Source of the DNA: Macrostomum lignano
Lineage: Eukaryota
Length of the DNA: 54,886 nucleotides
NCBI GenBank assembly: GCA_002269645.1
Contig: NIVC01003747.1
Coordinates: 1 to 54,886, forward strand
Direction of reading: 5' to 3'
How positions within the stretch are numbered: the first letter of the stretch is position 1; every line of letters begins with the position of its first letter. Positions 7,201 through 52,380 of the stretch are shown here, piece by piece. Position numbers and translations under genes: made by a program. The notes beneath the pieces are model-generated. The model was not told where the DNA came from, did no database searches, and saw nothing but the letters and a program-made list of their open reading frames with translations.

Positions 7201-7276
7201 TTCTCGTAGCTCTGCTAATAAAATTTAATTATCCTTTTCAGAAGTGAAAAAGAATATTTCTCTTTTCTCTCTTCAG

Positions 7277-11120: not shown

Positions 11121-11284
11121 GCATAGATGGAAGAATATCTTAAATGCCCTCAAGCTATATGTACACATTCAGAAGTTACGTGCTCTTTTAGCATGGTACA
11201 TGTAATAGATACTGTACATGTATAACATTGATACATTTGAGTGTAAGATGCGTTACATGTACGTAGCTACATGTATATATACAG

Positions 11285-11622
11285 CATGTTTTCTGTAGTC
11301 CTTCAACATTATTTTGGTTCGAGTGCCGCCGCTCTAATCTTGAGGTGCCAATGTTTAGAGTTCAATAGTCCCCAGTCAAATTGCGGCAGTCACTTGTCGA
11401 AGGCCCCAAAGGCCAAGACCCTAGGCCCCCTAAATACCATGCAGGATGTTGGGGACTGAGAGTCCCCTCTCGCGACATTAAATAATTAGTAAATGAACGG
11501 AGGCTGAGCCTTACGGGCATGAATTCAAGGTAGTAGAGCACCGGCCGAATCTCATACACGTAGCCCTAGCAACATTTAAACCGTCACCCATTCGCCACTC
11601 AAATACATGTACATGTATAGTA
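11285..11622 (-). repeat. Inner segment of the right arm of the large inverted repeat
   Basis: Reverse complement of 9658-9989, with two substitutions and a 6-bp duplication seen by eye. Confidence 0.95.
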
Positions 11623-11779
11623 TCTGTCTTCTGTCTTAATACTAAAACTGGTGCGTTGTTTGTCTGTGTGTGTGTGTGTTTGTTGGATATCTCTCTATCT
11701 ATCTATATATACTAAAGTTGACGCGTTGTTTGTCTGTCTGTCTGTCATTTCGACAACTCCTCCTTGAATAGTGGCAACT

Positions 11780-11818
<39 letters not shown>

Positions 11819-14380
11819 CTCTATCTCTTCTCTCTCTCTTAATACTAAAGTTGGTGCGTTGTTTGTCTGTTTGTGTGATACACATCTCCTCCTAGACGAC
11901 TTGCAAGTCAGCGTTGAAACTTATATGGGAACACTGCAAATTTTTCGAGGATGGCAGTGGGCTATTTCAATTTTTTATTTTCACGTCTTAAGATCCCTAA
12001 AAAAGCAGAAGTAGTAAAACAATAGGGGAATATGAACATCTTGCGTAATTTACAATTATTGCGCCACAACAGCCGGCCTATCTGTGCAGTGTATTCTTTC
12101 AACTGAAGGGGGTAAGCTGGGCCGGTTGACATCAATTTTTAGCGATTGCGCCACAACTGTGTGCACTGAGAACTTACCAAACCCCCCTGTGTTGAGGGTG
12201 CTGGGGCGGCAGTGGAATTCAATGAATAAACTTGCAAGCCTTTTTAGCAGGCAGTGCACGTATGCGTACACTCGATAGTTCAATGCTTTAAATTGGGATA
12301 TTTCAAACGCCAACTGTTCCTCGAGTTTTGAACTCTGAGAGAAGAGACTCATATTGCTGGAAAGATCTTTTAATGCTGACTTCGAGGATATAAGTTGTTT
12401 GCTTTAAATATGAAAGCAAAAAGCAAAGCAAAAGCAAAGACGATATTTCAATACTTTTAACTCTCTGCAAAGATTGTACTCATTTTACGGGTTCAATGGG
12501 GGTTCGACCGACACCCCAACAGTTAGGGGGGGGGGGGGTTGAATTTCTAACCTTCACTGCGTATTGGAAGGGGTCGGTCGCTGTGTATTGGAGGGTTGAT
12601 TTAGATTGCGCAATTTTTTTTTCTAATTTTACCGAGACTGATACTGAATGACTATGAAATTGGTTGCGCATTCAACTGATTCAATTGGTTCAATTTTTTT
12701 ATCGGCGCCTTTCAACACGCTGCTGTGTGTAGCTCTAACCCTAACCCTAACCCTAACCCTAACCATTGAATCCTGGGAGTATATTCCCTTTGACGGAGAA
12801 AATTTCGATTGAGTCCAGTTTCACGGAGAGAATTTCAATGGTTTTCAGTTTCTTGGAGATGATTTCTGTCTTGCGGAGAGGATTTCGATGGTTTTCAGTT
12901 TCACGGAGAGGATTTCTGTTTCGTGGAGAGAATTTTGATGTATTTCTGTTTTACGGAGACAATTTTGATGGATTTTAGTTTCACGCAGAGGATTTCCTTG
13001 GAGTTCAGTTTCCCGGAGAGGATTTCTGTTTCGTGGAGAGAATTTTGATGTATTTCTGTTTTACGGAGACAATTTTGATGGATTTTAGTTTCACGCAGAG
13101 GATTTCCTTGGAGATCAAGAGAGAGAGAAGAGAGAGGAGAGATGAGACAGGAGACGGTAGAGAGGAGAGGGGAAAGATGAGAGAATAGAGATGAGAAAAT
13201 AGAGATGAGAGCGCAGAGAGAAGAGATGAGAGATTGGAGATTATTGATAAGAAAGTAAGAGTAGAGATGAGAGAGGAGATAAGAGCAGAGAGAAGAGATT
13301 ATATAAAGGAGCAAAGAGGAGAGAGTAGATAGGAGAGTCTCAGTCTGGACCATGGCAGTCAATTTTTGCAAACAGGGAAAACATGCTATGATATTTCAGA
13401 GGTTTTATGGAGGATTTTGAAGATTTTTTGACGTAGACCCAAACAATTAAAAAGCATATTTTTATAGACCAGTTTCATAGTCTTGATTGACTGAAATTTG
13501 ATAGAGATAATATTTTTTAAATTGATGGATTGTAGCTTGAAGGAGATGATACACGCTTGATTGCAGTTTAATGGAGAGGATTTTGATGATACATGTATCT
13601 GTTTCATAGAGAGGATGAAATGGCTAAATGAAAGGGATTAGAGAAAAGAGAAAAGGAAACAGTAGATAAAATATTAGATGAAAGAGAACATGAAAAGAGA
13701 GAATTAAAAGGGACAGATTAGAGAAAAGAAAAAGAGAATAAAGGCGAGAGAAGAGATGAGGGAATTGAGAGGAGAGAGGAGAGGGGGTACGAGAGGAGAA
13801 AGAGGAGACAGGAGGGAGTAGAGCCGAAAGACGAGAGAGAAGAGATAAATGAGTAGAGATGAGGGGAGGGAGAGGAGAGAGAAGCGAGAGGATAAGGGAG
13901 AGAGGAGAAGGGAGAAAGTAGAGTGATGAGAGAGCAGAGAGGAGATAAAGGAGAGGAGAGAGAAGAGATAAAAGAGGAGAGAGAAAAAAGTAGTGAGGAG
14001 AAAGAAGAGAGTAGATATGAGAGCGCAGAAAGGAGAGATAAGAGAGTAGAGATGAGAGATGGGAGAGATGAGATGAGAGAGATGAGATGAGAAATAATAG
14101 ATAAACGAGCAGATGAGAGCAGAGAGGAGATAGGAGAGATTAGAGATGAGAGAGCAAAGAAGAGAGAGGGACAGACGACAGTCTCAGTCTGGACAATGGC
14201 AGGCAGTCAATTTTTGCAAACAGGTAAAACAACATGGTTTTTGGGAGGTTAATAGAGGATTTGGAGAGGATTTGGACGATGGGATTCATGTCATTGGATT
14301 CAGCTGATGGATTTCAAGGAATGAAATTCTGGCGATGGGAGTTCTATCCCCTTACTCCGCCAACGGAGGAGTTGGCCTCG
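11623..14380 (+). mobile_element. Helitron unit U1 (type A ends), preceded by two truncated 5' stubs
   Basis: 5' ends start at 11623, 11690 and 11780. CCCTAA tract at about 12736-12764. 3' end is ...GGAGGAGTTGGCCTCG. Confidence 0.85.
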
Positions 14381-15956
14381 CTTAATACTAAAGTTGGTGC
14401 GTTGTTTGTCTGTTTGTGTGATACACATCTCCTCCTAAACGACTTGCAAGTCAGCGTTGAAACTTATATGGGAACACTGCAAATTTTCCGAGGATGGCAG
14501 TGGGCTATTTCAATTTTTTATTTTCAAATTTTAAGATCCCTAAAAAAGCAGAAATCGTAGAACAATAGGGGAATATGCCCATCTTGCGTAATTTGCAATG
14601 ATTGCGCCACAGCAGCTGGCCTATCTGTGCAGTGTATTCTTTCAGCTGAAGGGGTGTAAGCTGGGCCGGTTGACATCAATTTTTAGCGATTGCACCACAA
14701 CTGCGTGCACTGAGAACTTAACCAAACCCCCCTGTGTTGATGGTGCTGGGGCGGCAGTGGAATTCAATGAATAAACTTGCAAGCCTTTTAGCAGGCAGTG
14801 CACGCATGCGTACACTCGATAGTTCAATGCTTTAAATTGGGATATTTCAAACGCCAACTGTTCCTCGAGTTTTGAACTCTGAGAGAAGAGACTTATATTG
14901 CTGGAAAGATCTTTCAATGCTGACTTCGAGGATATAAGTTGTTTGCTTTAAATATGAAAGCAAAAAGCACTGCATTCAAGAAGAGATTTCCATACTTTTA
15001 ACTTTCTGCAAAGATTGTACTCATTTTACGGGTTCAATGGGGTTCGACCGACCCCCTAACAGTTGGGGGGGGTTGAATTTCTTACCTTCACTGCGTATTG
15101 GAAGGGGTCGGTCGCTGTGTATTGGAGGGTTGATTTAGATTGCGCAATTTTTTGTTAACTTTTACTGAGACTGATACTGAATGACTGTGAAATCGGTTGC
15201 GCTTTCAATTGACTCAATTGGTTCAGTTTTTTATCGGCGCCTTTCAACACGCTGCTGTGTGTAGCTCTAACCCTAACCCTAACCCTAACCCTAACCATTG
15301 AATCCTGAGAGTTTATTCCTTTTGACCGAGAAAATTTCGATTGAGTCCAGTTTCACGGAGAGAATTTCAATGGTTTTCAGTTTCTTGGAGAGGATTTCTG
15401 TCTTGCGGAGAGGATTTCGATGGTTTTCAGTTTCACGGAGAGGATTTCTGTTTCGTGGAGAGAATTTTGATGTATTTCTGTTTTACGGAAACAATTTTGA
15501 TGGATTTTAGTTTTACGCAGAGGATTTCCTTTGAGTCCATTTTCACGGAGACGATTTCTGTTTCGCGGAGAGGATTTTGATGGTGTTCAGTTGCACGGAG
15601 ACGATTTCTGTTGCGCGGAGAGGATTTCGATGGTGTTCAGTTTTGCGGTGAGGAGTTGGATGATTTTGCGGTGAGGAGTTGGATGATTTTGCGGTGAGGA
15701 GTTGGATGATTTTGCGGTGAGGAGCTGGATGATTTTGCGGTGAGGAGTTGGATGATTTTGCGGTGAGGAGTTGGATGATTTTGCGGTGAGGAGTTGGATG
15801 ATTTTGCGGTGAGGAGTTGGATGATTTTGCGGTGAGGAGTTGGATGATTTTGCGGTGAGGAGTTGGATGATGGGATTCAGTTGGTGGATTTCAGGGAATT
15901 GAATTCCGGTGATGGGAGTTCTTCCCCTTCCTCCTCCGAAGGAGGAGTTGGCCTCG
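14381..15956 (+). mobile_element. Helitron unit U2 (type A)
   Basis: 5' CTTAATACTAAAGTTGGTGCG; 3' CTCCTCC-GAA-GGAGGAG-TTGGCCTCG; no GA-rich block. Confidence 0.88.
15641..15870. repeat. 23-bp tandem repeat x10 (TTTTGCGGTGAGGAGTTGGATGA) inside U2
   Basis: Exact 23-bp period over 230 bp, nearly invariant copies. Confidence 0.95.
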
Positions 15957-18696
15957 TATCTATATATACTAAAGTTGACGCGTTGTTTGTCTGTCTGTCT
16001 GTGTGTCTGTCTGTCATTTCGACAACTCCTCCTTGAATAGTGCCAACTCAGCGTTGAAACTTATATGGGAAGATTGGAAATTATCCGAGGTCGGCTATAG
16101 GCTATTTTAATTCTGAAATTTTAATTTCTAAGATCCTCAAAAAAGCAGAAAACGGCGGTCTTGACCTTTGATAATCTTAATTGTCCCCTCTTTCTGCTTG
16201 GAGCTGAAAATTTGCATGAATTTCAAGTGATTGCGCCACAACTTTTCCCTATCTCTGCAGTGTATTTTCTCTCCAGTGGGGGGATGGGGCGTTCTAAATG
16301 GCTGCCTGTGTACAATCGGACCCTGGCTCACTGGCTGACTGTATAGACAATTGCGCAAAGATTTGTGTTCTAATTTTCAATAGGCAGCCCTGTGATTTTG
16401 TTGAACGTTGAAATTCAATGCATAAACTTGCGGGCCTCTTTAGCAGGCAGTGAACGTACAATCGATATTTCAATGCTTTAAATCAGAAAGTTTCAAACGC
16501 AAACTGTTGCTTGAGTTTTTAACTTTGAGAGAAAAAATTTATATTGCTGGAAAGAACTTGCAAAGCTGATTTCAGGGATATAAATTGTTTGCTTCAAATA
16601 TGAAAACTAAAAGCTCTGCATTGCAAAAACTATTTCCATACTTTAAACTTTCTGCAAAGATTGTACTCATTTTGGCGAGAGGTGAGAGATAAAGTTGGGG
16701 GTTTCGACTTCCAACTGGCGCTGTGTATAGGAAGGGGGTCAGTTGCTTTGTATTGGAGGGTTGATTTAGATTGCGCAATGTTTTTGTTAACTTTAACTGA
16801 GACTGATACTGACTGACTGTGAAATCGGTTGCGCAATGAATTGATTCAATTAGTTCAATAGTTTATCAGTGCCTTTTAACACGAAGCTGTGCGTAGTTCT
16901 AACCCTAACCCTAACCCTAACCAATGAATCCGGAGAGTTGAGTTGTTTGACGGAAAAAATTGATTGAGTCCAGTTTAGCGGAGACGATTTCAATGTTTTA
17001 ATTTTGACAAAGAGGATTTCTGTTTCGTGGAGAGGATTTCGATGGTGCTCAGTTTCACGGAGAGGATTTTGATGATGTTCAGCTTCATGGAGAGGATTTC
17101 TGTTTCGCGGAGTTAAATTTATGATTTATTTCTGCTTTATGGAGACGATTTTGATAGATTTAAGTTTCAAGGAGAGGATTTCGAAGGTGTTCAGTTTCAC
17201 GGAGAGGATTTCGAAGGTGTTCAGTTTCACGGAGAGGATTTCGAAGGTGTTCAGTTTCACGGAGAGGATTTCGATGATGTTCAGCTTCACGGAGAGGATT
17301 TCTGTTTCGCGGAGATAATTTATGATTGATTTATGTTTTATGGAAACGATTTTGATGGATTTAAGTTTCAATGAGAGGATTTCGAAGGAGTCCAGTTTCA
17401 CGGAGAGGATTTCGATGGTTTTCAGTTGCACGGACAGGATTTTTCTGCTTCGCGGAGAGGATCTTGATGGATTTGGCATCTTCAATCAGTCAGAGAAGAG
17501 AGTAAAGAGAAGAAAAGAGAAGAGAGATGAGATGATAGAAAACAGAGTAGAAATGAGTGGAGAGATTAGACATGAGAGATGGGAGAGAAGAGGGGAGTAA
17601 GGCGGGAACGAAGAGGGAGAGAGAAGAGGAGAGAGGAGATGAAGGGAGAGGATATGAGAGAGGAGATATGAGATAGTAGAGAGGAGACAGGAGCGAAAAG
17701 AAAGGAGGGATAAGAGCGTACAGAGGCGAGGAGAGAAGAGAGGAAAGAGAGGAGAGAGGTGAGAGGTGAGAGGAGAGAGATGAAAGATCAGAGATCAGAG
17801 ATTTAAGAGAAGAAAGTAGTGAGGAGAAAGAAGAGGGTAAAGATGAGAGTGCAGAGAGGAGAGAAACGAGAGGAGACAGGTGGTAGAAAGGAGTGTAAAA
17901 AACAGGAGATAAGAAAGGAGAGGGTGAGAGTGAGAGCATATAGGAAAGTGTAAAAGGGGAGCAGAGGAGAGAGAATAGATAAGTGAGTAGAGAAGAGATA
18001 TGAGAGAGGAGAGAGGAGAGATTAGAGAAGAGATGAGGGGAGATAAGAGGAGAGAAGAGGGAATGGAGAGGAGAGAAAAGAGAGGAGAGGAGACAGGTGA
18101 TGCAGTAGAAAGGGAAGAAAGATGGTAGATAAGAAAGGAGAGGGTGAGAGCGTATAAGAGATACGAGAAATGAAAGCAGAGAGAGGAGAGAAAAGGTGAG
18201 ATAGAAAGTAGAGCGGAGACGATAGGTAAGTGAGTAGATATGAGATATTAGAGGGGAGAGAAAAGGGGAGAGATAAGAGAGAAGATAGGAGAGTAGACAG
18301 GAGAGGGTACAGACGAAAGGCGAGGGAGAAGAGATAAATAAGGGAGTAGAGATGAGATATGAGAGAGAAGAGATAAGCGAGAAGAGTAGGAATAGAGGAG
18401 AGAGAGAAGCGAGAGAAGGGAGAGAGGAGGGAGAAGAGAGATGAAAGATCAGAGATGAGAGAGATGAAAGTGTAGACAGGAGTAATTAGTGAGGAGAAAG
18501 AAGAGAGTAAAAATAAAAATTAGAGCGCAGGGCGCAAGAGATGAGAGATGGGAGTTGATAGATTGTAGAAGATTTGGAGATGATTTGGAAGATGGGATTC
18601 AATTCATGGAATTTCAGCTGATAGGAGTTCTTCCCCTTCAGAATTCCGGTGATGGGAATTCTTCCCCTTTCTCCTCCAGAGGAGGAGTTCCACTCG
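15957..18696 (+). mobile_element. Helitron unit U3 (type B)
   Basis: 5' ..ATACTAAAGTTGACGCG; GA-rich block at about 17490-18560; 3' hairpin-TTCCACTCG. Confidence 0.88.
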
Positions 18697-20765
18697 TATA
18701 TACTAAAGTTGACGTGTTGTTTGTCTGTGTGTGTGTGTGTGTGTGTCATTTCGACAACTCCTCCTTGAATAGGGGCAACTCAGCGTTGAAACTTATATGG
18801 GAAGATTGGAAATTATCCGAGGTCGGCTATAGGCTATTTTAATTCTAAAATTTTAATTTCTAAGATCCTCAAAAAAGCAGAAAACTCAAATCTTGACCTT
18901 TGATAATCTTATTTGTCCCCTCTTTCTGCTCGGAGCTGAAAATTTGCATGAATTTTAAGTGATTGCGCCATAAAATTTTGCTACCTTGGCAGTGTATTTT
19001 CTCTCCAGTGGGGGGATGGGGCGTTCTAAATGGCTGCATGTGTACAATCGGACCCTGGCTCACCGGCTGACTTTATAGACAATTGCGCAAAGATTTGTGT
19101 TCTAATTTTCAATAGGCAGCCCTGTGATTTTGTTGAACCTTGAAATTCAATGCATAAACTTGCGGGCCTCTTTAGCAGGCAGTGAACGTACACTCGATAT
19201 TTCAATGCTTTAGATCAGAAATTTTTAAATGCTAACTGTTGCTAGATTTTTGAACTTTGAGAGGAGAGACTTATATTGCTGGAAAGAGCTTGCAACGCTG
19301 AGTTCGGGGATATAAGTTTCTTGCTTTAAATATTAAAACTAAAAGCACAGCATTTAAAAAAACGATTTCATACTTTTAACTTTTTGCAAAGATTGTACTT
19401 ATTTTTGCGATAGGTCAGAGATAAATTTGGGGGGTTCAATTGCCAATTCAATTGGGGGTCGGGCGCTGTGTATTGGACGGTTGATTTAGATTGCGCAATC
19501 TTTTTGTTAACTTTACTGAGACTGATTCTGACTGACTGTGAAATCGTTTGCGCCATCAATTTGTTTTATTATCTGTGCCTTTCAATAGGCTGCCCTGTGT
19601 AGTAGCCGGCCTGTGTAATGAATGAATAGACTTGCGAGCCTCTTTGGTAGGCAGTGAACGTACACTCGATGTTTCAATGCTTTAAAACGGGAACTTTAAA
19701 ACGCTAACTGCTCTTCGAGTTCTAAACTTTAAGAGAAGAGACTTATACTGCTGAAAAGATCTTGCAACACTGAGTTCGAGGGTGTAAGTTTTTTGCTTTA
19801 AATATGAAAAGAAAAGCACAGCATTTAAAAAACTATTTCCATACTTTTACTTTCTGCAAAGATTGTACTCAGTTTTGCGAGACGTAATAGATAAAGTTGG
19901 GGGGAGGGTTCAACTTCTCACTGCTGCTGTGTATTGGAGGGTTGATTTAGATTGCGCAATCATTTTGTTAACTTTAACTGAAACTGATACTGTCTGACTG
20001 TGAAATCGGTTGCGCAATGAATTGATTCAATTAGTTCAATATTTTAATCAGTGCCTTTTAACACGAAGCTGTGCGTAGTTCTAACCCTAACCCTAACCCT
20101 AACCCTAACCAATGAATCCTGAGAGTTGAGTTGTTTGACGGAAAAAATTCGATTGAGTCCAGTATAGCGGAGACGATTTCAATGTTTTAATTTCAACAGA
20201 GAGGATTTCTGTTTCGTGGAGAGGATTTCGAAGGAGTCCAGTTTCACGGAGAGGATTTCGATGGTTTTCAGTTGTACGGACAGGATTTTTCTGCTTCGCG
20301 GAGAGGATCTTGATGGATTTGGCATCTTCAATCAGTCAGAGAAGAGAGTAAAGAGAAGAATGAAAAGAGAAGAGAGAGAGAGAGGGTTTAGAGAGACGAT
20401 AGATAAGTGAGTAGAGATAAGATATGAGAGGAGAGAAGAGGGAGAGATAAAAGAGAAGAGAGGAGACACGAGACAGGAGAGGGTACAGACGAAAGACGAG
20501 GGAGAAGAGATAAATAAGGGAGTAGGGGTAGAGATGAGAGAGAGGAGAGAGAAGAGAGTCACGATAATAGCAGAGAGGAGAGAGGAGATATGAGAGACGT
20601 GAGAGTCTTTGAGCTATGGTCTTTGAAAGGTTTTGTAAAGAATTTGGAGACGATTTGGAAGATAGGGTTCAAGACATGCAATTTCAGTTGATGGATATTT
20701 CAGGGAATAGAATTCCGGTGATGGGAGTTCTTCCCCTTTCTCCTCCGAAGGAGGAGTTCCACTCG
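18697..20765 (+). mobile_element. Helitron unit U4 (type B, two internal modules)
   Basis: Type B ends; the internal module occurs twice. Confidence 0.88.
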
Positions 20766-20800
20766 TCTATCTCTATCTATATATACTAAAGTTGACGCGT

Positions 20801-20832
<32 letters not shown>

Positions 20833-41700: not shown

Positions 41701-41866
41701 TGAGAGTCTTTGAGCTATGGTCTTTGAAAGATTTTGTAAAGAATTTGGAGACGATTTGGAAGATAGGGTTAAAGACATGGAATTTCAGTTGATGGATATT
41801 TCAGGGAATGGAATTCCGGTGATGGGAGTTCTTCCCCTTTCTCCTCCGAAGGAGGAGTTCCACTCG
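38724..41866 (+). mobile_element. Helitron unit U14 (type B, three internal modules)
   Basis: Type B ends; module region matches U5. Confidence 0.88.
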
Positions 41867-44153
41867 TCTATCTATACTAAAGTTGACGCGTTGTTTGTCT
41901 GTCTGTCTGTCTGTGTGTGTGTGTGTCATTTCGACAACTCCTCCTTGAATAGTGGCAACTCAGCGTTGAAACTTATATGGGAAGATTGGAAATTATCCGA
42001 GGTCGGCTATAGGCTATTTTAATTCTAAAATTTTAATTTCTAAGATCCTCAAAAAAGCAGAAAACTCAAATCTTGACCTTTGATAATCTTATTTGTCCCC
42101 TCTTTCTGCTCGGAGCTGAAAATTTGCATGAATTTTAAGTGATTGTGCCATAAAATTTTGCTACCTTGGCAGTGTATTTTCTCTCCAGTGGGGGATGGGG
42201 CGTTCTAAATGGCTGCATGTGTACAATCGGACCCTGGCTCACCGGCTGACTTTATAGACAATTGCGCAAAGATTTGTGTTCTAATTTTCAATAGGCAGCC
42301 CTGTGTTTTGTTGAACCTTGAAATTCAATGCATAAACTTGCGGGCCTCTTTAGCAGGCAGTGAACGTACAATTGATATTTCAATGCTTTAAATCAGAAAG
42401 TTTCAAACGCAAACTGTTGCTCGAGTTTTTAACTTTGAGAGAAAAAATTAATATTGCTGGAAAGAACTTGCAAAGCTGATTTCAGGGATATAAATTGTTT
42501 GCTTTAAATATGAAAAGAAAAAGCACAGCATTGAAAAAACTATTTCCATACTTTTAACTTTCTGCAAAAATTGTACTCAGTTTTGCGAGACGTAATAGAT
42601 AAAGTTGGGGGGAGAGTTCAACTTCTCACTGCTGCTGTGTATTGGAGGGTTGATTTAGATTGCGCAATGTTTTTCTTAACTTTAACTGAGACTGATACTG
42701 ACTGACTGAGAAATCGGTTGCGCAATCAATTGATTCAATTGGTTCAATTTTTTATTTGAACACGCAGCTGTGTGTAGCTTTAACCCTAACCCTAACCCTA
42801 ACAATAACCCTAACCAATGAATCCTGATATTTATTTTTTTTGACGGAGAAAATTTCGATTGAGTCCAGTTTAAAAGAGAGAATTTCGATGGTTTTCAGTT
42901 TCACGGAAAGGATTTCGAAGGAGTCCAGTTTCACGGAGAGGATTTCGATGGTTTTCAGTTGCACGGACAGGATTTCTGCTTCGCGGAGAGGATCTTGATG
43001 GATTTGGCATCATCAATCAGTCAGAGAAAAGAGTAAAGAGAAGAATGAAAGCAGAAGAGAGATGAGATGATAGAAAACAGAGTAGAAATAAGTGGAGATA
43101 TTAGACATGACAGATTGGAGAGAAGAGGGGATTTAGGCGGGAACGAAGAGGGAGAGAGAAGAAAAGAGGAGAGAGGAGAGAAAATAGATTAGGGATAAGA
43201 GCGTACAGAGAAAATAGAAGAGAGGGGAGAGTAGAGGAGAAAGAAAGAGTGAGATGAGGGGATGAGGGATGAGAGAGGAGGGGAGACAGGAGAGACAAGA
43301 AAGGAGAAAAGAGGGGAGAAAGGAGAAAGGAGAGAGTAGAGACGAAGGACCAGTTAGAAGATATAAATACGGTAGTAGAGATGAGAGGAGAGATAGGAGA
43401 GAGAAGCGAGAGAAGAAGCGAGAGGAGAAGAGAAAGAGGAGAGAGGAGAGAGATGAAATAGATAAGAGAGTTAAGAGAGGAAAGTAGTGAGGAGAGGAGA
43501 GATGAGAGATGCGATGATAAGAGATGAGTGAGAACATAAGAGAGAAGAGAGAAGAGATTAGAGAAGAGAGGGGAGAAGATAAAAGGAGCAAGGAGAGGAG
43601 AAAAGATACAATGGAGAGGATAGAAAAGAGAGAAGAGAAGAGACAGGGAAAAGTGGAAAGGAGGAAAGAAAGATTGGAGACAAGTAAGTGGAGTGTGAGA
43701 GCGTATATGAGATATGAGAAATGAGAGCAGAGAGGAAAGAAAAGAGAAGAGAGAGAGGGTTAAGAGAGACGATAGATAAGTGAATAGGGATGACATATAA
43801 AAGAGGAGAGAAGAGGGAGAGATAAGAGATAAGAGAGAAGAGAGGAGACAAGAGACAGGAGAGGGTACAGACGAAAGACGAGGGAGAAAACATAAATAAG
43901 GGAGTACGGGTAGAGATGAGATGAGAGAGAGGAGAGAGAAGAGAGTCACGATAATAGCACAGAGTGGAGAGAGTAGATATGAGAGACGTGAGAGTCTTTG
44001 AGCTATGGTCTTTGAAAGGTTTTCTAAAGAATTTGGAGACGATTTGGAAGATAGGGTTCAAGACATGGAATTTCAGTTGATGGATATTTCAGGGAATGGA
44101 ATTCCGGTGATGGGAGTCCTTCCCCTTTCTCCTCCGAAGGAGGAGTTCCACTC
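41867..44153 (+). mobile_element. Helitron unit U15 (type B)
   Basis: Type B ends; the terminal G is missing at the junction (CACTC|TCTTAAT). Confidence 0.88.
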
Positions 44154-44928
44154 TCTTAATACTAAAAGTGGTGCGCTGTTTGTTTGTCTGTATGTGTGTT
44201 GCAATTTTTCTCCTAGACTACTGACAAGTCAGCGTTGAAACTTATATGGGAAAACTGCAAATTTTCCGGATTGGGTTTATAGCTATTTTAATCTTTAGGT
44301 TTTATATTTTAAGATCCCTAAAAAAGCAGAAAACTGATTTCCTAACCTTCTTTGGCCCTTCTGTGGCCACTCTGCCTCTCCATTGGAGGGGTTGCAGTCT
44401 GTTTGTAAAAATAGCCACCCCTACCTCCGCCCGCGGGTCGCTGTGTTTTGGGGGGGTGGGTGCGCGTGTTCCGCGTTCAATGCAAAACCCCCCCGCGTGT
44501 TGGGGGGTTCAATTAAATTTAACGATTCCCCGGAATGGGGGTTTGGGCTTGGGCTGAGTGTACGTAGCAGTTGTACAGTGTAAGCAGATAGATAGGACTG
44601 CCGAGATTCAATTGGTTTTATTGGCGCCTTGAGTCAGTCCATTGCATTGGCTGGGCAGTGGGGACAGACTGGTGGGGCTTAAGGTTCTTTTTTATTGATT
44701 TTTACTGACAAAAAATTGTGTACACTGACTGGGCCTTTCTTAAGGAGGCCAATTTTCAATTCTCTCTAGAGATTTTTCTCCAATCTGCTGAATCTGGTGA
44801 AATTTCTATTTGCTTATTCCTTCTATTCTTTTCTATTCTTTGCTTATTATCACCATCTACTTTCTATTTGCCTACTTTTGCTTTGTTTATTTTTGCCTGT
44901 TCATTGTTTATTGTATACGCGAAAGAAA

Positions 44929-47900
44929 ATGCCAAAACGCGGAAGTATTTCCCGTTCTACACGTGCTGCATCGGCAGCTAAAAAGCGCAGGGCCTCGGAG
45001 ACACCCGAGGAGCGCCAGCATCGCCTTGAAGCGAATCGACGGCGCACAGCCGAAAGCCGCGAGGCTGAAGGCGAGGTGAAGCGCCAGAATCGCCTTGAGG
45101 CGAATCGACGGCGCACAGACGAAAGCCGCGAGGCTGAAGGCGAGGTGGAGCGCCAGAATCGGCTCGACCACGACCGGCTGCGTGCTGCCGAAAGCCATGA
45201 AGCAGAGGCCGAAGCGGTCCATCAGCTTTGCTTGGAGGCGCAGCGGCAGCGCACAGCCGAAAGCCGTGAAGCCGAGGACGAGACGGTCCATCAGCATCGC
45301 CTGGAGGCGCAGCGGCAGCGCCAGAACCGGAATCGCGCGGCTGAGTCCGCTGACGACCACAACCGCCGCCTAAACGCACAGGCAGAGTGGCGCCGAGACA
45401 GGTAGGGGTTCCTATATATTTTTATTTTACATTCTGCTATTTTTATATTATTATATATTATTTTCTGAGACAATTAAACTCTGCATACAGAACTGGATTC
45501 TCAAGGAGAAGTCATGCCTTATGATTAAAATGCTTTTTCTTTCATTGTCACAGACTGCTGGAGCTGGCACACCGGCCACATGTGCTCGGTCGCATGGACC
45601 GCCAATGCCCGCACTGCAGCGCGCTACGCTGGAAGGACGAGCCAGCTAGCATTTGCTGTCACGCTGGAAAGGTGAGTCCATTTTTTATTTTAGTTTACTT
45701 TAATTGCTGCTTCATTATTGCTTTTTATACTAATCAATGTATACAGTATAAAACCTCTGACCACCAATGGAGTCATAGAAAATTGCGTGATGTGCTGCTG
45801 AAAGTCATTAATCCAACTTTAATCCAACTCAGACCGTCCTGGAGCCCCGCCGTGACCCCCCTGATGTCCTGAAGCGGCTTCTGACTGGCCAGCACCCAGA
45901 CAGCTCTCAGTTCCTGAAGGACATCAGGAAGTACAACGGCGCGCTCCACATGACGTCGCTCGGTGCCAAGCAGCGTGAGCAGCCCGGCTGGAACCCGAGC
46001 TTCATCCTCAATGGTCAGGTGCACCACAAGATCGGCAGTCTCTTGCCGGATCCGGGGATGAGGCCAGGTTCTGCCAGGTCTTTTTTGTGGACCAGGAGCT
46101 GCAAACCCGGCTGCAGTGGGCCACCGGACTGAACGGTCGTGTGCTGGAAGAGCTGCAAGCCATGCTGCATGCGTGCAACGGCTACGTGCGCAGCCTCAAG
46201 TCCGCCGTTGACTTGCTCCGCAACGACCCTCAGCTGCAAAGCGCCAAGGTCGTCATCAACCCTGATGCCCGTCCATCAGGGGAGCATGCCAGACGCTTCA
46301 ATTTGCCCGAGTGCAGTGAAGTCGGCATCCTGACGGACCTTGACGATACCGAAGGCGCAGCCCAGACGCGACGGCGGGACGTGATTTTGCGTCTGAGGGG
46401 CGGTGGTGAGTTCTGCATCCCGAAATTATGTTAAACTTTTTTTATTTGTTAATACAGGCGTTTAAATCATTTTCCTAAAAAGACTCAGACTTTTGCGCTT
46501 CTTTATGTGATAATGCACATGTATCGCTTAAATATTGAAGCAATTTATTATCTCTTGCTTTTGTGTGAATTGGAAGACTCAAGCATTCTGTTTCATTAAT
46601 TTAGTTGCTACTTATTTGCATTTAAAAATGAGAATGCGCCATTCATCATTTTTCATTCACAGGCCTCCAGAGCATCTGTGACACCCACCGCTCCTACGAT
46701 CCCTTGGAGTACGTCCTGCTGTTCCCATTTGGTGAGGACGGCTGGAGCATCGGACTCAAGCAGGATCGTGGCATCACTATCATGAAGTACTATGCCTTCA
46801 TGATCCAGGTGCGTCCAGGCCAGTTCAATAGCCTGCTGTACGGTCGCCGGCTCTTCCAGCAGTACCTGGTAGACCAGGCTGCTAAGATCGAGTCCGAGCG
46901 ACTTACGTACATCCGACTGCACCAAAAGGATCTGGTGTCGGAAAGTCTTCGGGGTCTCCGAGACGCGCTGCACGAGGACGACGGCAGGCCGGAGGAAGTC
47001 GGGAAGCGTGTCATTCTTACTTCCAGCTACGTGGGAGGTCCACGGTACCGTCTGGAGCGTCAGCAGGATGCCATGGCGTATGTTCACGCCTTTGGCCGCC
47101 CAGACCTGTTTCTGACGATGACATGCAACCCGAAGTGGCCGGAAATTCTGGCCGAGCTGCTTCCAGGACAGACTGCCGTCGATCGGCCGGACATTACCGC
47201 CCGGGTGTTCGAGCTGAAAAAGAAGGCCTTCCTAAACAGGCTGAAGAGTCTGTTTGAAGATACTCTGGCTCGAGTCTGCTCGCTGGAGTACCAGAAGCGA
47301 GGCAAGTGTGAAATTTGTATGAACTTTTGAAAATTTTAACATTTAAATGTTGCATTAACTGTCGCCTCAATAATTTCGTAAATTTCAATAGAGTTTTTAA
47401 TTTTATCTACATCCAGGTCTTCCCCACGTGCACGCGCTGCTTTGGCTGGCGAACAAGCTGAAGCCGGATCAGTACGACGCCGTCATCAGCGCGGAGATCC
47501 CGGACCCTGTCGCCGACGCCGACCTGCATCAGCTGGTGGCGGAGAACATGCTGCACGGTCCCTGTGGACAGCAGCTCAATTCTGCCGCGGCGTGCATGGA
47601 GAAAGGCAGGTGCAGCAAGCGCTACCCGAGGGAGTTCCTGGCCGCCACGAAGGTGGAGGAGGATGGCTACCCGCATTACTGCCGCAGATCCGTCGAGATG
47701 GGCGGCTTCACGGTGACGAAGCTCGCAAAGCTGCGCGGCGGTCAGAGGGTGATGTTCACCTTTGACAACCGCTGGGTGGTGCCGTACTGCCCAGCGCTGC
47801 TGCGCGAGTTTCGCTGTCACCTGAATGTCGAGATCTGCGCGACAGTTCGGGCCATCAAGTACGTGGTGAAGTACATCACCAAGGGTAGCGACATGGCAGC

Positions 47901-50703
47901 ATACCAGATCCGCAAGGAGTCGGCGGCTGCTGCGAATGCCAGCGCTGATTCGGCCACTGAAGGACCACTGGCGATCGCCGGTCCGTCCGCGTCGACTGGG
48001 ACTGCTGCTGCTGCTGCTGCGACTTCCGCAAAGCGACGCAAGATCGACGAGATCGACGAATACCTACTGGGCAGGTTCATCGGTCCAATGGAGGCGGTTA
48101 ACACCATCCTGGGCTTCGAGGTGCACAGCCGATACCCGCCTGTGATCAGGCTCGCGGTTCATCTTAAGGACGAGCAGCGGGTCTTCTTCACTGACGAGAC
48201 GGCTCAGGCTGTTGCTGCTACGCCCAAGGCCACGACTTTGACCGCCTTCTTCGATGTGAGTTTTGCAGACAAAGTGCAATTTGTTAAATTTATTCCTCCT
48301 TCCTGTTTCTACCCGCCCACTTTCCTGTTCCTACCCGCCCAGCTCTGTCGCCATGACGAAATCGCCCGAGGTCTGCTGTACCAGGAGGTGCCCCGGCACT
48401 TCACCTGGGACCCCAGGGCGCACCAGTGGCATCGCGCAGGTCGCGGCCGAGTCGCTGCTGATCAGCCAGCCGATGTTCTGACGACCAGCAACATCGGCCG
48501 CATCTACACAGTCAGTCCTCGGATGGGCGACTGTTTTTACCTGCGCCTGCTGCTGGTGAATGTGCGCGGCCCGACTTCGTTCGAGGCTCTGCGCACTGTT
48601 GACGGAGTCCTGCTGCCGACCTTCAAGGCCGCCTGCCAGGCTCGCGGACTGCTGGAAGACGACAGGCACTGGCAGCTGTGTCTGTATGAGGCTGCCCAGA
48701 CGCGGATGCCTGCTGCTCTGCGCCGACTTTTTGCCGCAATTTTGGCTCACGGCGATCCCAGCGACCCCGCCAAGCTCTGGGAGGAGTTTTCCCGCGAGAT
48801 GGCTGGTGACCTGCTGCATCAGGGCTTGAGCGCCGAGGCTGCTAGGGCCGAAGTGCTGCGGTCGCTGCAGAAGCGGCTGGAGCGGATGGGCGGATCCGAG
48901 CTGTCTGCCTACGGCCTTCCTGAACCACCGGCAGAAGCGGATCAAGTAAATGAACTCACTGCTATGCACACTGACTGTTGATATTTTTAACCTTTAATAG
49001 CTTACTGATGACAGCTTCTTCTCAATATCCAGACTCGGCTTCTTTCTGACTGCCTGCCGACGCCGCAAGAAGCTGCTGAGCTGCAGTCTGAAGTGGATGC
49101 GCTGGTCGCTACCCTGACTGACGAGCAGCGAGCTGTCTTCGAGGCCGTGCAGTCCAATCTGACGGCCGGTGGCGGCGGGCTGCACTTCATTGACGCTCCT
49201 GGAGGCACAGGCAAGACGTTCCTGCTCACGCTTCTGCTGAAGTCGGTTCGAGCAAGGCGTCAAATTGCTGTTGCCGTCGCGTCATCGGGCATCGCGGCGA
49301 CTATTCTTCCCTGAGGTCGGACCGCCCATTCGATGTGAGTTTTGTGTCTGCATCAATCATTTTATAAACGGTTCATTTTTAAGCACAGAAAGGCATCCTT
49401 TTAATCCTTTTAATTTATCCTCAAAATTGAAAATCCTCGCGATACCTGCCTACAGGTTCAAGATCCCCGTCTGCGCTGTACGGCAGGACAGCGCCTTCTG
49501 CTCCATCGGCAGGCGGAGCAAATTGGCGGAGATTCTGCGGAACGCCCGCCTCATCGTGTGGGACGAGGCTCCGATGACGCACCGCAAAGACCTCGAGATC
49601 GTCGAGCGTACTCTGCGGGATTTGCTGCACGGTGGGCAGCCGTTCGGGGGAGCGCTGCTGGTGCTGGCTGGCGACTTTCGCCAGTTGCTTGCTGTTGTGC
49701 CCGGAGGGACGCAGGCCAACACGATTGAAGCCTGCCTGAATCGGTCGGTGCTGTGGCCGCACTTCAGGCAGCACCAGCTAACAAGGAATCTGCGGCTGGA
49801 GGGCGGCTCGGCTCTCCAAAGCTACGCGGATTTTCTTATGCAGGTGAGAATCTATGGAGTTTCTATGCTCTCATTAAGCATGCAAATTGAAGGAAAAAAT
49901 TGTAAAATTTTATTCCACTTTTTCACCGTCAGGTTGGCAACGGGGAGCTGCCAGAGGACGTTGAGGGCATGGTCTCCTTGCCTAGCGAGATCCTTCTGCC
50001 CGAGGACACAACCACTGAGCAGCTCATTCGGCATGTTTACCCGTCCTTTGAGCCGAGTGCGCAGCGTGACCAGATGTTCGCGGAGCGGAGCATCCTGGCG
50101 CCACTCAACAGGACGGTGGACGAGGCCAACGCCGCCTGCTTAGCGCTCTTCCCCGGTGAGAGTCGAGTCTACTTATCTGTTGACTCGATTCCGAATGACG
50201 ACACGGCAGCCACCAATTTTCCACCGGAGCTGCTGAACCGGCTGGACCCCAGCGGTATGTCGCATCACCGACTGGAGCTGAAGGTCGGCATGCCGGTCGT
50301 CATGATGCGGAATCTGGACCCACCGCTGCTGTGCAACGGGACTCGGCTACTGCTGCGTGAACTGCGTGACAACGTCCTGCTAGCGGAGGTAACCACCGGC
50401 GTCTACCGTTCGCGGCAGGTGTTCATCCCGCGGATCCCGCAGGAGCCGAGTCCGACAGAGGTTCCGTTTGTTTTCCGCCGTCTGCAGTTCCGGATCCGGC
50501 CGTGCTTCGCCATGACCATCCACAAGAGCCAGGGCCAGTCGCTGGGCACCTACGCCGTCGACCTGACGACGGCTTGCTTTCAGCATGGCCAGCTCTACGT
50601 GGCTCTGAGTCGTGCGCGGAGTGCCGATGGCGTTAAAGTTCGGGCTCCAGGCGGACGGACGCGGAACATCGTGCTGCGCCAGCTTATTGGCAAGCAGAAC
50701 TGA
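44929..50703 (+). pseudogene. Helitron RepHel transposase (HUH Rep + Pif1-family helicase), 9 exons, about 1568 aa when restored. Exons: 44929-45401, 45554-45671, 45833-46405, 46663-47301, 47417-48255, 48343-48945, 49033-49334, 49456-49843, 49933-50703
   Basis: Zn-finger CPHC..CCHAGK; Rep motifs PDLFLTMTCNPKW, EYQKRG|LPHVH and KYVVKYITKG; helicase motifs DAPGGTGKTF, IVWDEA, GDFRQL, FAMTIHKSQGQSL and HGQLYVALSR. Splice phases are mutually consistent, and the exons sum to 4706 bp (4707 with one base restored). One -1 frameshift at about 46065 and a TGA at 49312-49314. Confidence 0.93.
44998..45390 (+). repeat. 69-bp (23-aa) coding repeats, 5-6 copies, STPR-like, in the RepHel N-terminus
   Basis: ETPEERQHRLEANRRRTAESREA / EGEVKRQNRLEANRRRTDESREA and further copies, with a 23-residue period. 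Confidence 0.75.
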
Positions 50704-50747
50704 TTAGACTCAATTGAATTAACAGACTCAAATGACAGAAATATAAT

Positions 50748-51290
50748 ATGAGTGACATATTATAAGAGTGAGTGATAAATTATGAGAGTGAGAGAAAAAT
50801 TATCAGAGTGAGAGACAAATTATGAGAGTAAGTGAAAAATTATGAGAGTGAGTGACAAATTATGAGAGTGAGTGACAAATTATGAGAATAAATGACAAAT
50901 TATGAGAGTAAGTGACAAATTATGAGAGTGAGGGACAAATTATGAGAGTAAGTGACAAATTATGAGAGTAAGTGACAAATTATGAGAGTGAGTGACAAAT
51001 TATGAGAGTGAGTGACAAATTATGGGAGCGAGTGGGTGAAAAATTATGAGAAGGAGTGGTTAATCATGAGAGGGAGTGAAAAATTATGAGTGACAAATTT
51101 GAGAGCGATAATACTTATGAGGGTGCAAAATTCAGGATGTCATATTGAGTGTGACGAATTATGAGAGTGATAAATTATGAGAGACAAATTATGAGTCAAA
51201 AAAATTTTGAGAGTGACGAATTCACGAGCGAAAATACTTATGCCACATTGAGTGCCAAATTGAGAGTGCGACAAATAATGAGACTGATAA
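50748..51290. repeat. 20-bp tandem repeat (AAATTATGAGAGTGAGTGAC) downstream of the RepHel stop, decaying toward the right
   Basis: Regular 20-bp period at about 50775-51025, degenerate afterwards. Confidence 0.92.
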
Positions 51291-52127
51291 ATCTTTTAAC
51301 ATAAACTATTAGGTAGTGGCAAAACTGTTTCTTGATAGAGTTGCTCATATAAGGGGAGCTTCTAAGAATGCTCAGGCTCCAAGCAATTTAGATTCAATTG
51401 CCGTACTTATTTTTTCTGAATCTTTTTAATGTACAAAGTAGCCGTTCGTAATTATTTATGTATTTTGTTACACGTGTAATATTAACGGCCAATTCACACA
51501 TTTAGTATTGTCAGTTAAGTTATTAGATTTCTTCCACTTTCTCCCCACCTTTGCTTGCACCCCTATTATAACACAATTGCATTGCTTTAATAAAAAATAT
51601 ATGCCATACTGTACTCGGGTGCGCAGGATTCAGAATACAAACGAGCCAGTCGATTGATAGGCTATTAGTAAACATCATAAATAATGAAAAGGTATTACAT
51701 GCACATAAATTCTGAATTAACAATTATGCAATACTTAGCCAATGACCCGTGCTTATACTATCCCTTTAATTTGGTCGTTTCCTGCGCACCCCCCAATGAT
51801 GTCTTTGAATTAGTTTTTTAATATATTTAACGGAGACACAGAAGTATAACTACCTGATAGGAATGGATGCGTTAGTTAGATTTCTAATTGCGCGTTGTGT
51901 ACTGAAAGTGTAGGTCGCTGTGTACGTATTGGAGGGTTGATTTGGATTGCGTAACCTTATAGTTAATTTATAATGAGCCTAACACCGACTGCCTGATAAA
52001 TTGATTACGTCATAAATGCTTTGTGTGACTCTTACTCTGACTGACTTAGCTCATGAGATTCAGCTGATGGATTTCAGGGAATGGAATTCCGGTTATGGGA
52101 TTCCGGTGATGGGAGTTCTTCCCCTTT

Positions 52128-52150
52128 CTCCTCCGGAGGAGTTGGCCTCG
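52128..52150 (+). terminator. Helitron 3' terminal palindrome and CTCG end
   Basis: CTCCTCC/GGAGGAG at 52128-52141, a 5-nt spacer, then CTCG at 52147-52150. The same motif, with a 3-4 nt loop, ends the other units (imperfect in U1). Confidence 0.85.
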
Positions 52151-52380
52151 TACTGTAATAATGAGCCGTACCTTTTTGTAATCCAGTTTGCCAAAACAAT
52201 ATATATACGTACATGTAGAACCAACTTCGGGCACTTCAGGCACTGCGAATTCACTCGATTCAGTTGAAGGGTAGGCAGAGACAGAGAGCCAGCTTTCTGC
52301 CTTAAACTGACTGACTGAATTCATTCTCATAGCATCGCTCTATGCAAATAAGCCTGTCAGCCTCGTCAGCTGTTATCAAA

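Follow-up and report, generated by a model that had tools for sequence, protein, structure and literature searches.

Results

An array of co-oriented Helitrons fills a single A|T site

The window analysed here, the whole 54,886-nt contig NIVC01003747.1 of Macrostomum lignano, ends inside an inverted repeat and carries at 11623-52150 a 40.5-kb stack of 16 co-oriented Helitron units (U1 to U16) with 5′ stubs (Table 1). The 3′ motif GGAGGAGTTSSMCTCK is found 16 times in the window (0.02 expected), its matches ending exactly at the 16 unit ends listed in Table 1, from 14380 to 52150. The 5′ motif ATACTAAAGTTGRYGCG is found 20 times (0.01 expected), at the 16 unit heads and in four stubs (11639, 11709, 23613 and 26060), and every match of either motif lies on the + strand. 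The units range in length over 1.1-9 kb; each is complete, has intact termini and carries a short telomere-type (CTAACC)n tract, and most pairs of units are 80-94% identical. An earlier sequence-only reading had recognised the array, placing it at 11600-52160 rather than within its actual limits, and had given the subfamily order A, A, B×6, A×3, A/B, B×3, A, with which the head and tail types agree exactly. The CTCG|T junction that it described along the array is present at 13 of the 15 junctions, the exceptions being U1|U2 (CTCG|CTTA) and U15|U16 (CTCT|CTTA).

Table 1. Features of the Helitron array and its host flanks (window coordinates; "second copy" is the other copy of the locus)
Feature	Position	Strand	Description
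Left arm of host inverted-repeat element	6793-9998		Inverted copy of both array flanks; uninterrupted target A9657|T9658
Spacer between inverted arms	9999-11275		Mariner-type transposase fragment at 10482-11006
Array left flank	11276-11622		Proximal part of right arm; last base is target base A11622
Outermost 5′ leader TCTGTCTTCTG	11623-11633	+	Canonical TC start; common to second copy (alignment with C3272)
Stub A	11634-11689	+	First ~56 nt of an A-type (U9-like) element; this copy only; inserted at G|T within leader
Stub B	11690-11778	+	Leader and first ~70 nt of a B-type element; also in second copy, there ~190 nt
U1	11779-14380	+	A-type head, alpha tail (TTGGCCTCG), leader with (TCTA)12; backbone unit; head GACGCG in second copy
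U2	14381-15956	+	A head, alpha tail; backbone unit; tail beta in second copy
U3	15957-18696	+	B head, beta tail (TTCCACTCG); this copy only, unit Y in its place in second copy
U4	18697-20765	+	B type; backbone unit
U5	20766-23605	+	B type; backbone unit; leader, head and microsatellite not alike in the two copies
Local tandem duplication	21732-28547	+	Period 2448 bp, about 2.8 copies, 99.7%; no counterpart in second copy
U6	23606-26052	+	Product of the local duplication
U7	26053-28501	+	Product of the local duplication
U8	28502-30929	+	B type; backbone unit
U9	30930-32154	+	A type, 1.2 kb; this copy only; clean gain or loss between CACTCG and TCCTAATACT
U10	32155-33274	+	A′ type; variant tail GGTCTCG; backbone unit
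U11	33275-34557	+	A′ type; this copy only, unit W in its place in second copy
U12	34558-36417	+	A′ head with beta tail; backbone unit, 99.5-99.7% to second copy
U13	36418-38723	+	B type; backbone unit, 99.5-99.7% to second copy
U14	38724-41866	+	B type; this copy only, U12-like unit X1 in its place in second copy
U15	41867-44154	+	B type; tail CTCT; backbone unit; second-copy counterpart lacks about 0.6 kb
U16	44155-52150	+	RepHel-coding; alpha tail, CTCG end at 52150; 99.8% identical in second copy
Array right flank	52151-54886		Distal part of right arm; target base T52151 first; reaches contig end

The left arm of the host element preserves both array flanks in inverted form: 6793-9306 is the reverse complement of 52381-54886 at 98.6% identity and 9656-9998 that of 11276-11619 at 97.7%, and more than ten further uninterrupted copies of the host arm are found elsewhere in the genome. 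The filled site reads ...TATAGTA|TC...CTCG|TACTGTAA... and the empty paralogue ...TATAGTA|TACTGTAA..., with no target-site duplication. Because the inverted flank copy keeps the empty site, the whole array fills one canonical A|T site, as the earlier reading had held. The mariner-type fragment in the spacer matches Pfam Transposase_1 with an E-value of 8.9e-4, which is below the family cut-off.

The RepHel unit and the class of the family

U16 has profile matches to Helitron_like_N (E 3.9e-51), PIF1 (E 1.1e-32) and Pif1_2B (E 2.3e-14), and its coding region, at about 46632-50703, is spread over four reading frames. From these domain matches U16 is predicted to encode the Rep/HUH domain and the PIF1-type helicase of a canonical Helitron. 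No endonuclease domain was matched among the ORFs scanned, and the family differs from Helentrons and Helitron2 in its target, A|T and not T|T, and in its TC and CTCG ends, which are not inverted repeats. The array resembles the canonical Helitron1-type animal elements Helraiser and HelibatN (PMC5876387) in its RepHel with Helitron_like_N and PIF1, in its 5′ TC (the array opens TCTGTC, and TC or TA directly follows CTCG in most units), in the hairpin near the 3′ end and in A|T insertion without target-site duplication. The hairpin, CTCCTCC-GAA-GGAGGAG, lies 9 nt before the 3′ end in all 16 units and folds at -6.3 kcal/mol in beta tails, more weakly in U16. Unlike Helraiser and HelibatN, which end in CTRR (PMC5876387), the units end in CTCG (15 units) or CTCT (one), a variant terminus whose third base is C and not a purine; further differences are the variable T/C/A microsatellite leader at the 5′ end and the G|T internal target joints.

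A second copy of the locus has the same backbone and different single units

Joining contigs C3272, C4595 and C2633 gave us a second copy of the locus; the first two of these overlap at 95% identity over 1.7 kb (14 mismatches and 73 gap positions). C3272 alone was rejected as a second allele, its units not being collinear with U1-U11, and C4595 was found to bridge C3272 and C2633. The left flank of the second copy is 99.8% identical over 6 kb, and U16 with the right flank 99.6% identical over 9.9 kb. Ten backbone units (U1, U2, U4, U5, U8, U10, U12, U13, U15 and U16) are collinear in both copies at 99.5-99.8% identity. Since the two copies occupy one insertion site and have a common backbone, yet are unlike in single units, the locus has changed in place after insertion. 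As the host may be polyploid, the two copies could be homeologues and not alleles.

The second copy is longer at the 5′ side by eight extra units (about 24 kb), a block that sits downstream of stub B and the 11-nt leader common to both copies, and stub A is present at the outermost 5′ head of the window copy only. Six of the nine internal intervals are unlike between the copies (U3/Y, an added unit Z, U6-U7, U9, U11/W and U14/X1), U11/W and U14/X1 being swapped between identical neighbours; the 3′ boundary shows no difference. The U9 difference is bounded by the unit, at the internal joint CACTCG|TCCTA, and stub A differs cleanly at G|T, between CTG and TCTCT; both have exact canonical ends and only about 6 nt of flanking identity. 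Because U9 was cleanly gained or lost at a G|T joint within the array, G|T beside a head is used. The heads of U1 and U5 and the tail of U2 are unlike between the copies exactly where the neighbouring unit is unlike. These hybrid termini fit poorly with canonical cut-and-join integration, which counts against the accretion reading proposed below. For unit Z we considered a head swap, by a circle integrating through recombination in the head, and dropped it: Z is ~1% from U13 throughout and may have its own head.

Relatives of the units and marks of recombination

Nearest-relative identities were taken from a small sample of about 40 loci, in which unit V4 of the second copy scored 82% against 99% genome-wide; within this small sample, identity to the nearest non-allelic relative showed no trend along the array (rho -0.07, p 0.81). 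For copy-specific units, other arrays contain near-identical relatives (U11 100%, U3 99.6%, U9 99.1%, V4 99%, V2/V3/V5 99.6-99.9%), and the nearest relatives of backbone units are mostly at 80-98% (Mann-Whitney p 0.006; 0.025 without U6/U7). The first 800 bp of U11 are 100% identical to one unit of the C102 array, and those of U3 99.6% identical to V3 of the second copy. The 5′ region of U16 has no relative above 82% except its second-copy counterpart.

The local duplication begins 966 bp inside U5 and yields U6 and U7, within each of which a stub is followed by a full 5′ end. Units are mosaics: their segments match different units at 99-100% identity. The phase-shifted duplication, the hybrid termini of U1, U2 and U5 and the mosaic units are signs of recombination.

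Head-to-tail arrays across the genome

Genome surveys with queries of about 450 bp and exact patterns returned 1629 3′ ends by exact pattern, 1210 of them (74%) followed within 30 nt by the head ATACTAAA and 684 by the longer head motif ATACTAAAGTTG. Tail-to-tail joins numbered zero genome-wide by exact patterns among these 1629 tails, with 0-6 in controls and 0 in reversed-pattern controls. Head-to-tail arrays are the normal state of this Helitron family, and hundreds of similar arrays lie inside megabase contigs such as C1 and C32. A comparison of free heads with free tails (751 vs 1629) was discarded as a test of the target terminus, as it largely reflects pattern sensitivity; the apparent tail excess arises because heads are more variable than tails and foreign heads are common.

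The place of the RepHel unit varies among at least nine other arrays, for example 2nd of 7 units, 6th of at least 11, 4th of at least 6 and 7th of 22. At the 5′ boundary of the C1 array, which was fully read, lie two foreign 5′ stubs, and a foreign Helitron head adjoins the 3′ end of the array. C4120 was considered as a haplotig of this array and rejected, being a separate locus that matches only in the autonomous unit (98.9% identical).

Discussion

On balance, and with confidence only a little better than even, we read the locus as an accretion array of one young Helitron family, formed by integration at any resident 5′ terminus and then recombination, its order not being chronological. A founder Helitron would have entered the canonical A|T site in one arm of the inverted-repeat host element. 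Later copies, autonomous and non-autonomous and from several subfamilies, would then have entered, all in one orientation, immediately 5′ of the 5′ termini of resident Helitrons, each such terminus consisting of a T/C/A-rich leader and then the conserved ATACTAAA head. The outermost terminus or any internal tail|head joint could serve as the site, the upstream base need not be A, and abortive events would leave 5′ stubs of 50-200 nt. Homologous or unequal recombination in conserved heads, tails and bodies could subsequently duplicate, delete or swap units. Internal additions and losses, together with an end-proximal stub common to both copies, indicate that unit order is not chronological. We infer that the copy-specific units are gains rather than losses; pure 5′ growth with frequent precise unit deletions may also have produced them, gains and losses being indistinguishable from structure alone.

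With 74% of the 3′ ends in the genome abutting a 5′ head, a resident Helitron 5′ end appears to draw further Helitrons, which suggests that the transposase picks the resident 5′ terminus as target. Single-strand HUH transposons such as the IS608/IS200 family and IS91 use targets that mimic their own end flank. The likeness lies in the idea that the donor 5′ cleavage site may also be a preferred integration site, which would give co-oriented tandems; it is one of analogy only, and, unlike those elements, the array gives no evidence of a fixed target oligonucleotide. We tentatively suggest, as a possibility that we would not yet expect to prove right, that RepHel recognises the resident 5′ terminus (leader and ATACTAAA head) whatever the upstream base, donor-end recognition serving as target choice. 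If so, co-oriented nests of mixed subfamilies would follow, any head being able to receive the next copy.

The sequence-only reading had proposed strict growth at the 5′ end, in which all units would have entered through the host-A|TC boundary, the youngest lying 5′ and the oldest 3′, and copies of the locus would differ only by 5′ additions. Part of this is borne out by the copy comparison: the copies differ most at the 5′ side and agree at the 3′ boundary and in U16, and stub A is copy-specific at the outermost head. Stubs mark the 5′ boundary of the C1 array too, and the isolation of the U16 5′ region fits an old or rare lineage. However, the extra block lies downstream of a leader and stub that both copies have, which is at odds with growth only at the host-A|T boundary, and the turnover in the internal intervals contradicts the strict form. 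Relatives at 99.1-100% exist elsewhere for the internal copy-specific units U3, U9 and U11, the sites of U9 and stub A are G|T and not A|T, U6 and U7 arose by off-register local duplication, and apparent age in the small sample of about 40 loci does not follow position. The same reading had made the autonomous U16 the oldest unit and had itself counted random places of autonomous copies against the idea, and varied places are what the other arrays have. We consider strict 5′ growth quite unlikely, and the array is probably not the chronological record that it was taken for. Its notion of a self-targeting landing pad is retained in part, as tails so often abut heads and never tails, but the pad would not be ordered by age. 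Rolling-circle concatemers, by which the literature accounts for tandem Helitron arrays (PMC11934779 discussion; PMC5148889), could likewise have arisen here, through circular-intermediate rounds or read-through of internal 3′ ends, making up the array or large blocks of it before insertion in one piece at A|T. The single TC and single CTCG that bound the array at one site agree with this, as do the U13|U14 pair found again at C70 (96.5%) and the composite elements (stub then full 5′ end) found again at other loci. Yet identity between units is only 80-94% and several subfamilies are represented, so the units are not concatemers of a single circle. The boundaries of the sole near-identical units, U5-U8, do not coincide with the Helitron ends, the two copies differ by single units at the same site and backbone, and the one long collinear match found elsewhere (C4595) proved to join the second copy of the same locus. 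En-bloc insertion is in our judgement just as doubtful as strict 5′ growth.

Satellite-like evolution would need few insertions, followed only by unequal crossing-over and ectopic gene conversion among hundreds of arrays, with conserved heads and tails as homology arms and terminus-targeted transposition unnecessary. It accommodates the off-register duplication, the mosaic segments shared out of register, the swaps between identical neighbours (U3/Y, U11/W, U14/X1) and the hybrid termini, but leaves unexplained how mixed-subfamily arrays originate at a single A|T site, why 3′ ends abut heads and never tails, and the foreign head and foreign stubs of the C1 array; nor do the exact ends of U9 and stub A, with so little flanking identity, favour it. 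We regard it as unlikely as a full account, and the accretion reading takes up recombination as its later step. Mis-assembled repeats might have created the array or the differences between its copies, given that C3272, C4595, C2633 and C1368 begin or end inside the array, that overlaps at contig ends are gap-rich and that the window contig itself ends inside an inverted repeat. Against this stand ten units in the same order in independently assembled contigs, the consistency of both flanks with the empty site and the similar arrays within megabase contigs, and we think an artefact highly improbable.

Tandem Helitron arrays or multiple 5′ termini are known from Myotis, Drosophila, rice, maize, Arabidopsis and Fusarium/Metarhizium (PMC5148889; PMC11934779 discussion), and how they form is debated between rolling-circle concatemers and self-insertion. 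We found no published description of such arrays for the M. lignano genome. The known arrays are also head to tail, in one orientation and with short (<200 bp) duplicated 5′ termini (PMC5148889; PMC11934779). Unlike them, the array described here draws its units, RepHel copies included, from several diverged subfamilies; arrays are the dominant state of the family; and the two copies of the locus show directly that single units turn over internally and that recombination occurs. As in the leader-end growth of CRISPR or integron cassette arrays, new units lie beside a defined end and the copies differ most at that end; unlike in those systems, units are also gained and lost at joints inside the array, and both copies have the end-proximal stub.

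The locus is an unusually clean natural experiment: it includes the empty site, the array in full and, assembled independently, another copy with the same ten-unit backbone. Comparison of the copies indicates that complete single units come and go at tail|head joints, G|T included, and that recombination reshuffles them, and unit order in such arrays should not be taken as a timeline. If the transposase does target resident 5′ termini, this would explain the near-exclusive array life of the family, its mixed-subfamily arrays and the seeding of satellite-like DNA by Helitrons. In cnidarians, a 372-bp Helitron derivative makes up 26% of the genome after amplification at chromosome ends (PMC11934779). 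Those subtelomeric repeats are, like the array, Helitron-derived units with local tandem amplification and a minisatellite association (PMC11934779), whereas the units in M. lignano are full-length elements. Should RepHel recognise resident 5′ termini, the nests would also disperse minisatellites and telomere-type (CTAACC)n tracts across the genome.

The array and its insertion site

The array of co-oriented Helitron units U1–U16 (numbered 5' to 3') is real and well defined, as the sequence-only reading had described it. In the window, which is one entire contig (C3747, 54,886 bp), the 3' motif GGAGGAGTTSSMCTCK occurs 16 times (0.02 expected) and the 5' motif ATACTAAAGTTGRYGCG 20 times (0.01 expected), all on the + strand, giving 16 complete units and four truncated 5' ends, or stubs. 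At the 5' end of each unit a short T/C/A-rich leader precedes a conserved head, ATACTAAAGTTG(GT|AC)GCG, and the unit is closed by the hairpin CTCCTCC-GAA-GGAGGAG and then TTCCACTCG (beta) or TTGGCCTCG (alpha). The types of head and tail give the same subfamily order as was read earlier, A,A,Bx6,Ax3,A/B,Bx3,A. The features of the element place it among canonical Helitrons, with CTCG as a variant 3' end; a Helentron identity was rejected on these features. For the RepHel protein of the window, the best named relatives are Macrostomum lignano proteins, at no more than 91 % identity.

An inverted copy of both array flanks lies within the window (6793-9306 is 98.6 % identical to the reverse complement of 52381-54886, and 9656-9998 is 97.7 % identical to that of 11276-11619), and there the flanks are contiguous at A9657|T9658, an empty site. 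The filled site reads ...TATAGTA|TCTGTC...GGCCTCG|TACTGTAA..., the array starting with TC and finishing with CTCG without a target-site duplication. The entire 40.5-kb array therefore occupies one canonical A|T site.

Positions of features in the window
Feature	Position	Strand	Remark
U1–U16, 3' ends in order	14380, 15956, 18696, 20765, 23605, 26052, 28501, 30929, 32154, 33274, 34557, 36417, 38723, 41866, 44154, 52150	+	
U16	44155-52150	+	Helitron_like_N and PIF1 domains over four reading frames
Stub A	11634-11689	+	5' motif
Stub B	11690-11778	+	5' motif
Two further stubs	one within U6, one within U7	+	5' motif
(CTAACC)3-6 tracts	12735-12764, 15267-15296, 20081-20110, 29424-29459, 40570-40603		each remaining non-autonomous unit also has one site
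23-bp tandem repeat (TTTTGCGGTGAGGAGTTGGATGA)	15641-15871		near U2 3' end; 10 copies at 99 %
Leader microsatellites	11780-11826		also at junctions throughout
Inverted-repeat element, parts	6793-9998, 9999-11275, 11276-11622, 52151-54886		6793-9998, inverted copy of both flanks; 9999-11275, 1.3-kb spacer between arms
Mariner-type transposase fragment	10482-11006		in the spacer
31/60-bp satellite (GGGGAGAGCGGCGGAAAGCAGCGGAGCTGTT)	8728-9426 and 52381-52953		host arms; ~23 copies
C-rich 21/42-bp satellite	5491-7200 and 54475-54886		host arms; ~1.3 kb

A second copy of the locus

A second copy was reconstructed by joining three contigs fitted end to start (C3272, C4595 and C2633). C3272 matches the left flank of the window at 99.8 % over 6 kb, has the same inverted repeat and insertion point, shares an 11-nt leader (TCTGTCTTCTG) and stub B with it, and extends 12.7 kb into the array before the contig ends. 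C4595 (41,039 bp) is array throughout; its first 1.7 kb overlap the last 1.7 kb of C3272 at 95 % (14 mismatches, 73 gap positions), and its last 8.5 kb overlap the first 8.5 kb of C2633 at 99.3 % (4 mismatches). C2633 starts within the array and ends with U16 and the right flank (99.6 % over 9.9 kb); C1368 is a third contig with the right flank and the end of U16.

The joined array is ~59.8 kb long and holds 22 units, in the order stub B, V1-V6, AUTO2 (a 9.1-kb RepHel unit), B0, U1, U2, Y, U4, Z, U5, U8, U10, W, U12, U13, X1, U15, U16. The ten collinear units found in both copies (U1, U2, U4, U5, U8, U10, U12, U13, U15 and U16) agree at 99.2-99.9 % of aligned bases, U15 of the second copy being without 0.6 kb. 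M. lignano has extra chromosome copies, and the second copy may thus be an allele or a homeologue.

Turnover at internal joints and recombination

The sequence-only reading had proposed that the array grows only at the host-A|T boundary on its 5' side, making unit order a chronological record, and that alleles share 3' units and differ at the 5' end. To first order the last point holds, the 3' boundary being the same and ~24 kb being extra on the 5' side. The extra block (eight units, between stub B and U1, in the second copy only) does not adjoin the host boundary, being downstream of the leader and stub common to both copies. Counted as events, most differences are internal. Stub A is present in the window only. 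Six of the nine internal intervals differ (U3 versus Y; U11 versus W; U14 versus X1; Z, U6 and U7, and U9 each present in one copy), an outcome at odds with a chronological record; intervals U1-U2, U12-U13 and U15-U16 are identical.

One group of events has exact Helitron ends. U9 (TCTTA...GGCCTCG) is flanked by CACTCG and TCCTAATACT, and the second copy reads CACTCG|TCCTAATACT. Stub A sits inside a leader, with ...TTCTG on one side and TCTCT... on the other. At U11/W and U14/X1 an entire unit is exchanged and the neighbours on either side are identical, U13 beside the latter being the same to its final base except for one substitution. Sites of exact-end events are G|T, not A|T, and have in common a resident leader and head 3' of the site. 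Because the U9 and stub A sites are G|T, the premise that only the host A|T boundary receives new elements fails. The data support a wider version of the self-targeting landing pad, with any resident 5' terminus as a possible target, and do not support strictly polar growth or a chronological record. The RepHel transposase would, we infer, pick a resident 5' terminus (leader plus head) as its target. On structure alone, copy-specific units could be gains or losses alike.

Not all differences have exact ends. The segments 21732-26096 and 24180-28547 match at 99.7 % (period 2448 bp), starting 966 bp inside U5; U6 and U7 were made by off-register local duplication. The copies also differ at termini, in the U1 head (GGTGCG versus GACGCG), in the last 7 nt of U2 (alpha versus beta) and in the leader, head and microsatellite of U5, each exactly where the adjacent unit differs, and many units are mosaics, their segments matching different units at 99-100 %. 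Together, the off-register duplication, hybrid termini and mosaics point to recombination within conserved termini and bodies as a process that reshuffles units.

Age and position of units

A polar array would have its autonomous copy, the oldest unit, at the 3' end; varied positions had been named in advance as evidence against this, and varied positions are what we found when RepHel matches were located relative to the listed 3' ends and junctions. RepHel is second of seven units in the C1 array (by sequence reading), sixth of at least 11 on C32, fourth of at least six on C108, mid-array on C135, C413 and C392, and 5' of the listed junctions on C414 and C291; in the second copy of the locus, RepHel units are seventh and 22nd of 22.

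As a proxy of age we used identity of the 5' 800 bp to the nearest non-allelic relative, sampled from both locus copies, the C1 and C4120 arrays and 30 junction loci. Identity showed no trend with array position (Spearman rho -0.07, p 0.81; small sample, noisy measure). Window-specific units stood at 99.6 % (U3), 99.9 % (U6/U7), 99.1 % (U9), 100 % (U11) and 94.2 % (U14), versus 79.7-99.1 % for the ten backbone units common to both copies (Mann-Whitney p 0.006; 0.025 without U6 and U7). Given their high identities, copy-specific internal units look like recent arrivals rather than relics, in a small sample and by a noisy measure. Genome-wide, U1 has 99 % relatives at three other loci and V4 has three relatives at 99 %. 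At least eight other copies match the RepHel core of U16 (46995-50284) at 97-99 %, and the upstream region of U16, 45000-45450, has no relative above 82 % genome-wide besides its second-copy counterpart; judged by these matches, U16 is a mosaic.

Arrays across the genome and among known Helitrons

In exact-pattern counts over the 764-Mb assembly (5269 contigs), the tail occurs 1629 times, and ATACTAAA follows within 30 nt in 1210 cases, so that 74 % of tails abut heads; the longer head motif ATACTAAAGTTG follows within 30 nt in 684. No two tails faced one another within 30 nt, and reversed-pattern controls gave 0-6 matches, so joining is frequent and strictly co-oriented. Arrays are the normal state of this Helitron family. 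Four contigs (C3272, C4595, C2633 and C1368) start or stop inside the one array. Since assembly breaks recur within Helitron arrays, their number and length in this assembly are probably underestimated.

The C1 array (read at C1:806001-836000) starts with two stubs from a different Helitron subfamily, ATACTAAA(A)ATCTCTAAGGTTTGTATGC, and its final CTCG adjoins the head of a further Helitron type, TATATACTAAAAATGAGTTG / TATATACTAAAAATGAGTTGTTTG; both features are as expected if new copies join 5' of a resident head. One internal C1 unit has the head ATACTAAAACCGACGCG.

Tandem Helitron insertions are recorded in Myotis, Drosophila, rice, maize, Arabidopsis and fungi, as are short duplicated 5' termini (PMC5148889; PMC11934779); our literature search found no description of a tandem Helitron array in M. 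lignano. The M. lignano arrays go beyond that record in mixing subfamilies, in the 74 % of family 3' ends that abut heads, and in the single-unit turnover at internal G|T joints, with recombination, seen between the two copies.

Repeats within units and the host element

All non-autonomous units contain telomere-type (CTAACC)3-6, ~0.9-1.85 kb from the 5' end, and downstream of it a 30-bp minisatellite (TTTCACGGAGAGGATTTCGATGG...) and a long GA-rich tract; the lengths of all three vary among units and between locus copies. Leaders, from CTCG to ATACTAAA, are variable T/C/A microsatellites (TAT, TCTTA, TCCTA, TCTATCTCTATCTATAT, (TCTA)12) of unequal length in the two copies, and may reflect integration that recurred a few bases into the leader. 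Some junction fillers have an extra TCTCG straight after CTCG (CTCG-TCTCG-TC...; C32:1316144, C135:336003, C414:525392), which may be the footprint of a lost unit.

The sequence that hosts the array is also a repeat, present as inverted pairs at many loci, with more than 10 further copies uninterrupted at the insertion position. The array lies in one arm of a large inverted-repeat element, possibly foldback-like or a long-TIR element, whose arms are at least 3.2 kb long and 98 % alike. The same inverted pairs, ~2 kb apart, occur on C958, C4944, C2325, C349, C984, C611 and C1424.
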